Source: Ranitomeya imitator (taxonomy: Eukaryota). Taken from it: a stretch of 64,000 bases of DNA. The stretch covers positions 130,076,001 through 130,140,000 of the forward strand of contig NC_091290.1 of the NCBI RefSeq assembly GCF_032444005.1, given 5' to 3'. A model generated the notes under the pieces. That model did not search any database and was not told where the DNA came from. It saw nothing but the letters and a program-made list of their open reading frames with translations. Shown here in pieces: positions 30,751 through 45,366 of this stretch. The position numbers were made by a program, and so were the translations under genes. How positions within the stretch are numbered: position 1 is the first letter of the stretch; each line of letters begins with the position of its first letter.

Positions 30751-32357
30751 CAGTGGGGCAAAAAAGTATTTAGTCAGTCAGCAATAGTGCAAGTTCCACC
30801 ACTTAAAAAGATGAGAGGCGTCTGTAATTTACATCATAGGTAGACCTCAACTATGGGAGACAAACTGGGAAAAAAAAATCCAGAAAATCACATTGTCTGT
30901 TTTTTTAACATTTTATTTGCATATTATGGTGGAAAATAAGTATTTGGTCAGAAACAAACAATCAAGATTTCTGGCTCTCACAGACCTGTAACTTCTTCTT
31001 TAAGAGTCTCCTCTTTCCTCCACTCATTACCTGTAGTAATGGCACATGTTTAAACTTGTTATCAGTATAAAAAGACACCTGTGCACACCCTCAAACAGTC
31101 TGACTCCAAACTCCACTATGGTGAAGACCAAAGAGCTGTCAAAGGACACCAGAAACAAAATTGTAGTCCTGCACCAGGCTGGGAAGACTGAATCTGCAAT
31201 AGCCAACCAGCTTGGAGTGAAGAAATCAACAGTGGGAGCAATAATTAGAAAATGGAAGACATACAAGACCACTGATAATCTCCCTCGATCTGGGGCTCCA
31301 CGCAAAATCCCACCCCGTGGGGTCAGAATGATCACAAGAACGGTGAGCAAAAATCCCAGAACCACGCGGGGGGACCTAGTGAATGAACTGCAGAGAGCTG
31401 GGACCAATGTAACAAGGCCTACCATAAGTAACACACTACGCCACAATGGACTCAGATCCTGCAGTGCCAGACGTGTCCCACTGCTTAAGCCAGTACATGT
31501 CCGGGCCCGTCTGAAGTTTGCTAGAGAGCATTTGGATGATCCAGAGGAGTTTTGGGAGAATGTCCTATGGTCTGATGAAACCAAACTGGAACTGTTTGGT
31601 AGAAACACAACTTGTCGTGTTTGGAGGAAAAAGAATACTGAGTTGCATCCATCAAACACCATACCTACTGTAAAGCATGGTGGTGGAAACATCATGCTTT
31701 GGGGCTGTTTCTCTGCAAAGGGGTCAGGACGACTGATCCGGGTACATGAAAGAATGAATGGGGCCATGTATCGTGAGATTTTGAGTGCAAACCTCCTTCC
31801 ATCAGCAAGGGCATTGAAGATGAAACGTGGCTGGGTCTTTCAACATGACAATGATCCAAAGCACACCGCCAGGGCAACGAAGGAGTGGCTTCGTAAGAAG
31901 CATTTCAAGGTCCTGGAGTGGCCTAGCCAGTCTCCAGATCTCAACCCTATAGAAAACCTTTGGAGGGAGTTGAAAGTCCGTGTTGCCAAGCGGAAAGCCA
32001 AAAACATCACTGCTCTAGAGGAGATCTGCATGGAGGAATGGGCCAACATACCAACAACAGTGTGTAGCAACCTTGTGAAGACTTACAGAAAACGTTTGAC
32101 CTCTGTCATTGCCAACAAAGGATATATTACAAAGTATTGAGATGAAATTTTGTTTCTGACCAAATACTTATTTTCCACCATAATATGCAAATAAAATGTT
32201 AAAAAAAACAGACAATGTGATATTCTGGATTTTTTTTTCTCAGTTTGTCTCCCATAGTTGAGGTCTACCTATGATGTAAATTACAGACGCCTCTCATCTT
32301 TTTAAGTGGTGGAACTTGCACTATTGCTGACTGACTAAATACTTTTTTGCCCCACTG
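30751..32357 (+). mobile_element. Full-length Tc1 DNA transposon (1607 bp), IR/DR type
   Basis: TA|CAGTGGGGCAAAAAAGTATTTAGTCAG...CTGACTAAATACTTTTTTGCCCCACTG|TA. TIRs of ~208 bp (30751-30958 and 32149-32357) differ at about 3 positions. The inner direct repeat AAAATAAGTATTTGGTCAG echoes the outer end. Confidence 0.98.
31118..32140 (+). CDS. Intact Tc1 transposase, 340 aa, DD34E
   Basis: Uninterrupted [19 protein letters not shown]...KGYITKY*. It has a paired-like N-terminal DNA-binding region, [19 protein letters not shown] and SPDLNPIE, with 34 residues counted between the second D and E. The start is placed at ATG 31118 by analogy with Tc1 transposases. Confidence 0.96.
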
Positions 32358-32559: not shown

Positions 32560-35500
32560 CCAAGCAGAGTTTCCAAGCTCCTCACTTCTGCTCGGCCTAC
32601 AACCTGCAATAGTGACTCCATTCCTTCACATCTCCTGCAGTCTCTCTCACCAGTGGTCACCACTCACCTGACTAAAATATTTAACCTCTCTCTTTCTTCA
32701 GGTATCTTTCCCTCCTCATTTAAACATGCCATCATAACCCCTTTACTTAAAAACCCATCCCTGGACAAGAACTGCACTGCTAACTACAGACCTGTCTCTA
32801 ACCTTTCCTTCATCTCTAAACTCCTGGAACGCTTGGTCCACTCCCGTCTAATCCGCTATCTCTTGGATAACTCTCTTCTCGACCCCTTACAATCTGGTTT
32901 CCGCTCTTTACACTCCACTGAAACTGTCCTCAATAAAGTCTCTAATGATCTAATAACAGCTAAATCCAAAGGTCATTGCTCTCTGCTGATTCTCCTGGAT
33001 CTATCTGCCACATTTGACACTGTGGATCACCAGCTCCTTCTCACTATGCTCCGCTCCATAGGCCTCAAGGACACAGCCCTCTCCTGGTTCTCCTCCTACC
33101 TCTCTGTCCGCACCTTCACTGTATCTTTTGCCGGCTCCTCTTCCCCTCCTCGTCCCCTTACTATCGGGGTTCCGCAGGGCTCAGTCCTGGGCCCCCTCCT
33201 TTTCTCTCTATACACTGCCCCTATTGGACAAACAATCAGCAGATTTGGGTTCCAGTATCATCTCTATGCTGATGACACCCAATTATACACTTCTTCCCCT
33301 GATATCACCCCCACTCTAATTCAAAATACCAAGGATTGTCTGTCTGCTGTCTCTAACATCATGTCATCCCTCTATCTGAAACTAAATCTCTCCAAAACTG
33401 AACTACTTGTGTTTCTCCCTTCTACTAACCTCACTCTACCCAACATCGAAATTACCCTGGAGGGTTAAACTGGATCACCCCCAGACGCAGGGCCGCGGGG
33501 TACTCGGTATCGGGTCCTTCGGTCCCTTCCTTCTGGTGATGTCACGGTGGCCCGACCCGGTCCGTGACCCTACTAAGGGGCGCTAAATTAAAGATGGTGC
33601 AAGTTTGTCAAGTTTTCGTGAAGCCACCTGTGGTATTCGGTCAGGGTGACCGACGCTGCTTAGGGGTCCACTGGGGTGATGTTATGGCAGCTAGATGTAA
33701 CACCTTCCCACAGGTGAAGTGTTTCCCCAGGGCTTCCCAGTAGATCCGCAATCCAGAGCACTGCTAACAGGGCTGGCTGAGACCGGCCGGTCCGAAGGTA
33801 CAACCAGAGTTCCCTTTGCAGGTGGAAATCAGTGCCTACCTTCTAGCACCTGGGTGTTGTAGTCCTTCCCTGCTGAGCACCACGGGATAGTCCTCACAAC
33901 TGTCATATTTGTTCTTTCTTTCTCCGTCCCCCAGATGATATGGCTATGACGCACCCAAATGACAGGTAGGCCTGGAGTTATTCTGGGACCCTAGAGACGC
34001 CCCTCTCCCACAATTGCCTCCTATGTCTGCTTAGGTGATTTAGGTGAGACAGCCAACCTATAATTAACTGTCCTGCCGCTGTTTGAAGTAAGGCTTGGAG
34101 CCCAATACTTCCTCGGCATTCTGGCCACCGGCTACGCGCCTCAGTAGGATGTTGCCGATCTCGGGGCATGACTCCTACTGGTTCTATCGCCTTTTTGCTG
34201 TGATCTCATTTCTCACTTCTCCACAATATACTTCACTTCATGTCCTTCCTTAAGATGCCGCCACAAGGTAGTGCAGGCGCAGCTCCGTAACAATCTGTCC
34301 TTTTCGCTAGGTCAATGCCAGGATCCCACCCCTGACAGAGACCCCCCTGAATCTCCCCCGCAACACCCTCTGCTCAGGATGTTGCCTGGACAAAACCCAG
34401 TCAGCTTCTCCCTCACTTCCTATCCAACCCCCAGTTTTACCCAAGTGTGAGGAGTGGCCTAATACATAGAACCCTTTTCTCCCCCTGGTGGCCGGAGTGT
34501 GAAGTGTAGTGTGTGACTGTGATACCTGGTCAGGTGAACTCCTTTAGTGTCATCAGACATAACATCACTCCCCTTAGTGGCAGAGCGACATTACTGCAAC
34601 GACCAGGACTCTGGGGCGATGCACAACCATAACTCCCAAGCAGCATGCCCACTGTCTTGGGGTCATATTCGACACCGAACTTTCCTTTACTCCCTATACC
34701 CGATCACTCACTCGCTCCTGTCACCTGCATCTTAAAAACATCTCCAGAATCTGACCTTTTCTCACCTTTGAAACTGCTAAGACTCTTACTGTTGCTCTTA
34801 TCCATTCTCGTCTGGACTACTGCAACTCTCTTCTGATCGGTCTCCCTCTTTCCAAACTTTCTCCTCTCCAATCCATCTTGAATGCGGCAGCCAGGGTCAT
34901 ATTTCTGTCCAGCCACTTCACCGATGCCTCCATCTTGTGCCAGTCATTACACTGGCTACCCATTCGCTACAGGGTCCAGTATAAACTCATCTCTCTCACC
35001 CACAAAGCTCTCCACAGTTCTGCACCGCCTTATATCTCCTCTCTCATTTCTGTCTATCGCCCTACACGTGCCCTCCGTTCTGCAAATGACCTAAGACTAA
35101 CATCCCCTGTAATCCGAACCTCGCACCTCTGTCTCCAAGACTTCTCTCGTGCTGCGCCAGCTCTCTGGAATGCATTTCCCCAGACGATCAGACTGATACC
35201 TAGCCCCGATCTATTCAAGCGCGCTTTAAAAACCCATCTCTTCAAACAAGCCTACCACATCAACTACTCAGTAAACTAACTTTGTCCTGTTCCCTCCTTC
35301 CAAATATTATTCTAAATCTGCACCCTACTATTCATCTGTCTCCACACCCTCCATGCACACTATTTATTATAATTGCCAGACCTGAAATAACAAGCACTTT
35401 TCACCTATTGTGTCCCCCCATTTCCTTGTAGATTGTAAGCTTGCGAGCAGGGACCTCACCCCTAATGTCACTGTTTAAATTGTCTTAACTTGTACTGAAT

Positions 35501-43020: not shown

Positions 43021-43952
43021 GTCATAACTCAACAAGTCTATCGCATACACATTTCTCAGTACGTGATGTGGGGTGCGCCTTCAAGGCTTAATTTATCTCC
43101 TCTTACTCTATCCGACACTCAACCTCTGTTCTACACTATAAAGTGAGCATAAATCCCACCCGGTTTTCCAGGAAGGCTCGGATTGGACTATTTAAAAATT
43201 GCTGTATTGTCCTTTGTGTAGAGACAATCACATGGACCCAGACTTAACAAGCTATTTTATTGATGTTTCCCATACAATATCCTAAGATGAGTGGTAGATG
43301 ATACTTTGTTCAGAACTGTTTATGCTAAATGTGTCTCTTTGTGACCAACCAGTGGCGGAAAGGTAAATTGCAACCAAAGGTTTTGCTGCCGTACAGGCAA
43401 AAATTTATTGAATTTGGGTCATAAAGAAATTGTTTCCTACTTCTGCTTTCCTGTCTGTCAAACTTCATATAAGCATGACATAACAGCAGGCTTTTAGTTC
43501 AGGGTTCGCAAACCAATAGACAATGGCAACGGCAATTAATGAAAGTCACGTCCTGGCTACTATTGTACTGGCCGGATGCTGTTGAAGAAGATTGACCTGG
43601 ATGGTGAATTATGGACAATTAAAGTTGACATATTAAACTGGTATGTGGATTAATTTCTTCGGGAGGGAATGAGGGCAGAAGTTGTGAAAGGACTATTGTG
43701 AAACAACCATTGACCCTAGATGGAGCCAATGGTTTCAAATCACTTTTTAAGGGACTGACTACTTCCCAAATTCACTTTTTAATGGATTTGATTCCACTAA
43801 TTTCCAGTTCTGACATGTGCTATGGTTTAGTCATTACTTACCTCTAGGACATGTCTTCGTTGGAACCAATTTCTCACTCTGAAATTAATATGTAGGAAAC
43901 AGTCACATCATTATCACCTGAAGGAGTCCTAGCAGGAATAGCTGAGGAACAT

Positions 43953-44965
43953 AATCAAACAAATAGGGCAGCACACTGCAGCGCCAAAACATGCAAACTT
44001 GAAAACACGAAATTTTTTATTTATTTTTTTTTTTTTTAAACTGCATTACTGCACTAGAAATATGAAAAATGAGAGCTTTTAGCGCATAAAAATGGCCAAT
44101 TTTATGTGTACCTCGTAGCCACGTTACGGCATCTCTCTTATACGAGGTCCTACTCTAAACCTACCTCTCTGAGAATAAACGTCTCCATCTGAATGGGTAC
44201 ATGTGAAACCTCTCCTTGGACTCAAATTCTCTCTCACTGTGGAGGGGTATTGGACCTACTATAATTAAAACACCTGAAGCTAGGAGGCAGGGAGTGCACG
44301 ATCAGAAGGCTAGAGAATACATTTCAAAAAACCTGATCTGCACATCCAAACATAGACACAGTGTGAACAGGTGCTGAACCCAGAGTCGCCAACTCGTATA
44401 TAATCAAACAAATAGGGCAGCACACTGCAGCGCCAAAACATGCAAATTTGAAAACACGAAATTTTTTTAAACTGCATTACTGCACTAGAAATATGAAAAA
44501 TGAGAGCTTTTAGCGCATAAAAATGGCCAATTTTATGTGTACCTCGTAGCCATGTTACGGCATCTCTCTTATACGAGGTCCTACTCTAAACCTACCTCTC
44601 TGAGAATAAGGTGTTTTAATTATAGTAGGTCCAATACCCCTCCACAGTGAGAGAGAATTTGAGTCCAAGGAGAGGTATTCTCAGAGAGGTAGGTTTAGAG
44701 TAGGACCTCGTATAAGAGAGATGCCGTAACGTGGCTACGAGGTACACATAAAATTGGCCATTTTTATGCGCTAAAAGCTCTCATTTTTCATATTTCTAGT
44801 GCAGTAATGCAGTTTAAAAAAATTTCGTGTTTTCAAGTTTGCATGTTTTGGCGCTGCAGTGTGCTGCCCTATTTGTTTGATTATATACGAGTTGGCGACT
44901 CTGGGTTCAGCACCTGTTCACACTGTGTCTATGTTTGGATGTGCAGATCAGGTTTTTTGAAATGT
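43953..44965 (-). mobile_element. Non-coding retro-type insertion: tandem plus inverted copies of a ~431-bp monomer with 15-bp TSD (Penelope-like / retrozyme-like candidate)
   Basis: ATAGCTGAGGAACAT occurs at 43938-43952 and 44966-44980. The monomer start ATAATCAAACAAATAGGG recurs at 43951 and 44400, and an inverted copy spans 44609-44967. No RT ORF is present. Confidence 0.85.
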
Positions 44966-45366
44966 ATAGCTGAGGAACATGACACACACACACACACACA
45001 CTGCGGCACAGATCCTCTACTCGCAGGGTTGTCAGCTACATTGCTAGAACATTCTTGATTACTAACATTAAAAATACATTGTAAAGAAAGCATCTGGAGA
45101 TCATGATTGCATTTCCATCTTCCTTCCTTATGTGGTTAGTACAAGATAATCTGCATATTTCCAATTCTCATAAATATATTGTAACACAATGCCAGATGTC
45201 CATGTCGACAGTTGCTTTATTGGAATAGGTTACAGTTGAGTTGGTGAAAAGGTATTTCCTCTTAAAGGGATTCTCATACTAGTGTTCAACCAACCAGTCA
45301 TGGAAATTTATCCTGAGGCCCTTCCGTCATCAATAGAAACTATGTTTTTAAGGCAATTCCTGCATG

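Follow-up and report, generated by a model that had tools for sequence, protein, structure and literature searches.

A young, ORF-less 431-bp tandem family in Ranitomeya imitator that was probably inserted by Penelope-like machinery

The window, i.e. the whole 64,000-nucleotide stretch of DNA analyzed here, contains a non-coding insertion (43938-44980) in which a repeated unit is followed by an inverted copy of part of itself, which raises the question of how such a structure was installed and by which enzymes. The initial annotation read the insertion as a young product of target-primed reverse transcription with twin priming, made from an ORF-less multi-monomer template that was mobilized in trans by a Penelope-like system, and labeled it retrozyme-like. 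Our analysis supports the core of that reading. We consider it likely that a single recent event inserted a non-coding, non-autonomous retroelement with a 431-nt monomer at this locus, and that the reverse transcriptase and GIY-YIG endonuclease of a Penelope-like element (PLE) carried it out.

The insertion is flanked by the 15-bp target-site duplication that had been reported as perfect, and its two copies are identical at 15/15 positions. The payload between them consists of ∼1.5 monomers of the 431-bp unit, followed by ∼0.9 monomer in inverted orientation. Monomer positions are numbered on a rotated unit in which position 1 is ATAATCAAAC; X and Y denote the two sites at which outer ends occur, as described below. 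The features of the insertion are:

43938..43952, no strand: target-site duplication, left copy (ATAGCTGAGGAACAT); the last 2 nt (AT) are possibly monomer positions 1-2 and are counted as microhomology
43953..44609, minus strand: left arm, ∼1.5 monomers, from position 3 (or 1) to 431 and on to 210; starts at Y
44013..44037, no strand: expanded, interrupted T-run of 25 nt (T7 elsewhere) in the outermost left-arm monomer
44317..44399, minus strand: segment E, internal copy (positions 349-431, 83 nt); the X-to-Y stretch, equivalent of the Penelope-like 'tail'
44609..44675, plus strand: right arm, inner end (reverse complement of ∼241-308); 1-nt overlap with the left arm at 44609
44676..44967, plus strand: right arm, inverted (reverse complement of 349-431, then 1-209); starts at X, and the RNA sense would be plus
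44885..44967, plus strand: segment E ('tail') at the right outer end; absent from the left outer end
44966..44980, no strand: target-site duplication, right copy, identical to the left copy
44981..44986, plus strand: GACACA target half-site, directly 3' of the duplication; fits a nick followed by G-N-C-W-Y-A

Repeat mapping gave the segment order that the initial annotation had proposed, i.e. A-B-C-D-E-A followed by an inverted C-A-E. The direct part (43951-44609) runs from monomer position 1 to 431 and on to 210, and contains repeat pairs of 68 nt (spacing 449) and 148 nt (spacing 431), each 99% identical; the 18-nt difference between the two spacings is the T-run expansion listed above, as had been suggested. 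In the inverted part, 44676-44967 is 99% complementary to 44317-44608, and 44609-44675 is the reverse complement of monomer positions ∼241-308. This arm lacks ∼30 nt (positions 211-240, segment B), and the gap lies between two CCTCTC repeats. The copies of segment A are near-identical, as claimed, with two C-to-T changes that distinguish the middle copy from the other two. The insertion also proved to be ORF-less, its longest open frame being 55 codons (44310-44477, minus strand), which spans both X and Y. When this frame was compared with 1.84 billion proteins there were four low-complexity multi-stretch matches and no PLE domains. Right after the right-hand duplication a (CA)n microsatellite begins (44981-45002); a bias towards microsatellite targets has been published for some PLE clades (PMC8557442).

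The unit is not confined to this locus. Using the monomer as a query against the 5.96-Gb genome (chromosomes up to 1.25 Gb) returned at least 303 full-length matches with 96-100% identity, and a 171-nt probe gave 1232 first-look candidates. The element is thus multi-copy, and occurs in dispersed tandem arrays of 0.6 to >10 kb on many chromosomes. We fetched 20 arrays and mapped their monomers. All 20 were ORF-less tandems, and insertions with target duplications were found at many loci besides the window. Many of the 141 full monomers equaled the consensus, and most others had 1-3 base differences apart from the T-run; in the plus arm of L046 all 12 full monomers equaled the consensus. Base changes specific to one array were common to all monomers of both arms in L044; in L038 and L042 full monomers were compared in a single arm, and all of them had the changes. 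This suggests a single type of template for each insertion. The family is very young, as many monomers equal the consensus and junctions are intact, and the arrays were inserted whole and not enlarged later by unequal crossing-over.

We compared the two-armed insertions in this sample (n=13: the window, L031, L033, L034/35, L039, L041, L042, L043, L044, L045, L046/47, L048 and L049). With the left arm of the window as the reference orientation, the arms converged in 13/13 cases, and a target duplication of 14-16 bp surrounded the whole array in 13/13. An assembly artifact had been raised as a possible source of the inverted arm in the window; the same architecture recurs at 12 other loci, each with its own target duplication, and the inverted arm is therefore not such an artifact. 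Arm length ranged from 9 nt to >14 monomers, and no two copies had their inner junction at the same monomer position; the junctions contained either an overlap of 1-10 nt or a filler of 1-20 nt. The outer ends, on the other hand, were confined to two places in the monomer, X (∼344-357) or Y (∼1-15), which are 83 nt apart, the distance being that of segment E. In RNA sense X reads ...GGUUUUUUGAAAUGU and Y reads ...UAUUUGUUUGAUUAU, and UUUGA is found in both. Every two-armed insertion (13/13) had one X end and one Y end, an outcome with a probability of 1.2e-4 if the ends had chosen X or Y independently and with equal odds. The 83-nt segment E is therefore present at exactly one outer end of each insertion.

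Five arrays departed from this plan: L032, L040 and L050 were single-armed, L037 had an unusual start and L036 had X at both ends. No target duplication or G-N-C motif (see below) was found in any of these five, which may be endonuclease-independent insertions or the result of later rearrangements.

The T-run offers a second view of the arrays. The longest run was often in the first-synthesized monomer of an arm, with T7 in the rest of the array; long outermost runs were seen in the X-start arms of L036, L038, L039, L040 and L042, and also at 44013-44037 in the window. T-run lengths along the array had a period of 3 in L044 and of ∼5 in L034. We used the T-run length series of these two arrays to look for in-register copying of the same RNA by both arms, and found no match.

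To characterize the target we rebuilt the empty sites of the 13 two-armed insertions, giving 26 nick sites. The base after the nick was G in 22/26 sites (binomial p 3e-10, 0.25 background) and the base two beyond it was C in 25/26 (binomial p 2e-14, same background), with W, Y and A favored at the three positions that follow G-N-C. The layout of the target is symmetric, i.e. G-N-C, 14-16 bp, G-N-C, with each nick just 5' of G-N-C. At the window the left half-site, outside the duplication, is the non-consensus TCC. One site had been hit twice: the independent insertions L046/L047 and L049 lie in opposite orientations at the same 15-bp site, CTATCACAYTGCATA, in two copies of a host repeat that are 86-95% identical (L046:1478-1492 with L047:1297-1311; L049:1894-1908 with L049:4231-4245). 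This is direct evidence of target preference.

These regularities can be accommodated by a single sequence of events. A multi-monomer RNA with the sequence of the left arm's minus strand would be bound in trans by the PLE protein, whose endonuclease would nick both target strands 14-16 bp apart, each just 5' of G-N-C. The freed 3' ends would then each prime reverse transcription at an internal RNA site, X or Y, marked by the UUUGA motif. Two cDNAs of the same sense would grow inwards for one to many monomers, their 3' ends would be joined via microhomology or short filler, and the gaps would be filled in. The predicted product is a duplication, an arm, an inverted arm and a second duplication, and only one of the outer ends would have the 83-nt 'tail'. 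Target-primed reverse transcription joins the 5' end of the cDNA to the 3' end of the target, and the outer ends therefore correspond to the starts of copying and the center to its stop. The plus strand of the left arm would thus have cDNA sense, and the RNA the opposite sense. We infer this polarity from the target-primed geometry and from head-to-head pairs of Penelope-like ORFs, and at the same level we infer the RNA intermediate, the PLE that supplies the enzyme and the linear or circular form of the template.

It had been argued that three copies of segment A require a template with at least three A segments, or a circle copied more than once. However, a circle is not needed, and two A segments suffice because the arms would be separate cDNAs, copying either the same RNA stretch or different RNA molecules.

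This scheme agrees with what has been published for PLEs. The anole PLE cuts and extends both target strands, and its reverse transcription begins at two adjacent internal RNA sites that are non-homologous to the target; the genomic 'tail' of that element is the sequence between the two start sites, and its insertion in vitro does not require hammerhead cleavage (PMC11167929). In PLE insertions, partial tandems are accompanied by an adjoining 5'-truncated copy in inverted orientation, and often only one end has the tail (PMC8557442, PMC3846280). We compared the 431-bp family with PLEs and their non-autonomous derivatives, i.e. Penelope/Poseidon and Neptune, the rotifer Pen families and Chlamydomonas MRC1/Chlamys (PMC11167929, PMC8557442, PMC3846280). 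It shares with them partial or full tandems and an adjacent inverted 5'-truncated copy that is head to head in RNA sense, a one-ended tail extension, a target duplication, and the use of two internal reverse-transcription starts with both target strands as primers. Another likeness is that terminal-repeat sequences suffice for mobilization in trans. Unlike PLEs, however, the family has no ORF, its tail is 83 nt as against the 30-40 nt reported, and its arrays reach >20 monomers; unlike Penelope/Poseidon and Neptune, whose terminal repeats typically carry a hammerhead, it has none. Neither the rule of one X and one Y end nor the symmetric G-N-C half-sites are stated in these papers.

We searched the same genome for a PLE that could act as a partner. 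There were 148 GIY-YIG matches, many of them in open frames of 800-930 aa, and these frames often form head-to-head pairs with the same polarity as that deduced for the 431-bp family. BLAST of the monomer against ten GIY-YIG loci (3.2-kb PLE 3' fragments, a tiny sample of the genome's PLE families) gave no similarity, and Rfam found no hammerhead in these ten loci. Local alignment of the monomer with the terminal-repeat and tail region of one PLE family gave a score no better than those of shuffles. The G-N-C motif was not seen at the four PLE ends that were aligned, the boundaries of which are uncertain.

One PLE family in this set has three alternative end points (L060:2150-2560, L061:2150-2420, L062:2165-2500 and L058:2510-2920). 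They lie downstream of a putative start codon, which itself comes after a CGAAACGCG motif. The first two end points are ∼82 nt apart, near the length of the 83-nt tail, and the sequence has no similarity to the 431-bp family. A short-period tandem array adjoins one of these PLE fragments (L062:1-901), with self-match offsets mostly ∼50 bp apart (78, 182, 233, 284...).

The other systems to which the family bears a close resemblance are the animal non-LTR retrozymes, e.g. newt satellite 2 and the axolotl and Xenopus families (Cervera and de la Pena 2020; Li, Clavereau and Pollet 2026 preprint). Like these, it is AT-rich and non-coding, its monomer measures a few hundred nt, its tandem arrays are dispersed and its target duplications exceed 4 bp, and it co-occurs with PLEs, which have been proposed as the mobilizers of retrozymes. 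The 431-nt monomer is just above the reported range of ∼170-400 nt. However, the type I hammerhead is absent from both strands. Rfam cmscan of more than two monomers, on both strands and at E up to 10, returned no ribozyme family, and a scan of the whole window at the gathering score found nothing. A relaxed hammerhead scan (CUGANGA / helix II / GAA) of the circular consensus in both senses gave nothing credible. The circular fold of the monomer had no obvious rod-like structure, and the X-Y region folded no better than shuffled sequence (z = +0.56). The 'retrozyme' label therefore does not hold, as it lacks its defining feature.

Strict retrozyme identity is ruled out by this absence (Rfam at E up to 10 and the relaxed scan). 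In a search of the genome with RF00163 we found only two solitary copies of the motif, within one 2.3-kb repeat and not in arrays. Both are type I hammerhead motifs above the Rfam gathering score (L051:1501-1543, minus strand; L052:1501-1543, plus strand), and the two host copies are 93% identical; the repeat has no tandem structure and no long ORF.

An alternative that we regard as unlikely is that the family is a true retrozyme: an unrecognized self-cleaving motif would cleave its RNA into monomers, which would be ligated into a 431-nt circle (or a small multimeric one) and reverse-transcribed by a rolling-circle mechanism. Such copying of circles has been published as the model for animal retrozymes (PMC7229834), and it would account for long arrays of identical monomers such as the 12 consensus monomers in the plus arm of L046. 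However, identical monomers are just as well explained by a long transcript from a homogeneous array that was already in place. Similarly, the T-run periods look as if a trimer (3 in L044) or a pentamer (∼5 in L034) had been copied repeatedly, but higher-order structure already present in the source array would also account for them. The very high summed word depth in two runs of one organism, described below, would also suit a retrozyme. The empty ribozyme searches and the lack of a rod-like circular fold or of stable folding in the X-Y region argue against it, and PLE insertion in vitro proceeds without hammerhead cleavage in any case (PMC11167929).

Mobilization of the RNA by a LINE (L1-like, with an APE-type endonuclease) through classical twin priming, as for SINEs and processed pseudogenes, is in our view very unlikely. 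L1 twin priming typically leaves 5' inversions with microhomology and duplications of 14-16 bp, and the L1 target site is of the TT/AAAA type. The 431-bp family looks L1-like in its inverted 5' segment, in the microhomology at its inversion junctions and in its duplications (14-16 bp, i.e. ∼15 bp), and the window contains a reverse-transcriptase fragment (32653-33468). However, there is no poly(A), A- or T-tract or microsatellite tail at any outer end. The ends are instead fixed internal sites of the template, always one X and one Y, an arrangement not expected from twin priming on a poly(A) tail, and the G-N-C half-site found on both strands differs from the L1 site. Movement as DNA, either as a foldback-type transposon whose inverted arms are built of subrepeats or through extrachromosomal or rolling-circle DNA that re-integrates, is more improbable still: although the long inverted arms of tandem subrepeats and the target duplication are superficially foldback-like, the termini differ in sequence (X versus Y, with an 83-nt offset), the duplication length is not fixed (14-16 bp), no transposase is associated with the arrays, and arm lengths and inner junctions are unique to each copy, so that no copy is a transposed replica of another.

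In its behavior the family is like a non-autonomous PLE derivative, and it is similar to animal non-LTR retrozymes in everything except the defining ribozyme. What it adds is a strict rule of one tail per insertion, a symmetric motif at the target and evidence for insertion of whole arrays. A stronger claim, which we put forward tentatively and with rather less confidence than the reading of the locus itself, is that a vertebrate tandem-array retroelement parasitizes Penelope-like machinery without any ribozyme. A limited literature search turned up no vertebrate tandem family described as PLE-derived and lacking a hammerhead. Animal retrozymes have been found and defined by their hammerhead motif, and families without it therefore go unseen.

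If this claim is true, hammerhead cleavage and RNA circles made by ribozymes would be dispensable in vivo for array-forming retrotransposition. The young, clean insertions would also reveal the geometry of PLE integration, i.e. symmetric nicks 14-16 bp apart, each 5' of G-N-C, and such a symmetric nick pair would suggest a dimeric endonuclease. Initiation would be obligately asymmetric, with one DNA end always using X and the other always Y. PLE transposition is little understood, and the 431-bp family bears directly on it. Were the PLE link to be confirmed, the family would provide a natural test of whether mobility needs a ribozyme and a convenient substrate for the biochemistry of PLE integration, as well as a reminder that satellite-like arrays can come from a single retrotransposition event.

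The family was also sought in sequencing runs from other organisms. Near-identical monomer 31-mers (shares 0.4-0.54) were present in runs X7, X9-X11, X13 and X15-X17, labeled as organisms B-G, and single runs held many monomer variants that were 90-99% alike. The occurrence of these 31-mers in at least six other organisms, together with the 90-99% variants, indicates that the family is shared among species and includes older subfamilies. For one organism, two small runs (X8 and X19; Logan contigs of unrecorded library type) had a very high summed word depth, with a ∼6-fold difference between them, which hints at transcription. The Logan contigs that hold the sequence (several organisms, library type unrecorded) contained no joints and no molecule ends.

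Two other parts of the window contain long open frames. At 485-2044 four overlapping ORFs of 319-519 aa lie on both strands of one 1.5-kb stretch and have no credible Pfam match; the presence of long frames on opposite strands points to biased or repetitive sequence. At 31046-32140 (plus strand) there is an open 364-aa ORF for a Tc1/mariner (Sleeping Beauty-like) transposase with HTH and DDE_3 domains, and the reverse-transcriptase fragment mentioned above (RVT_1, 271 aa, plus strand) lies ∼500 bp downstream of it.
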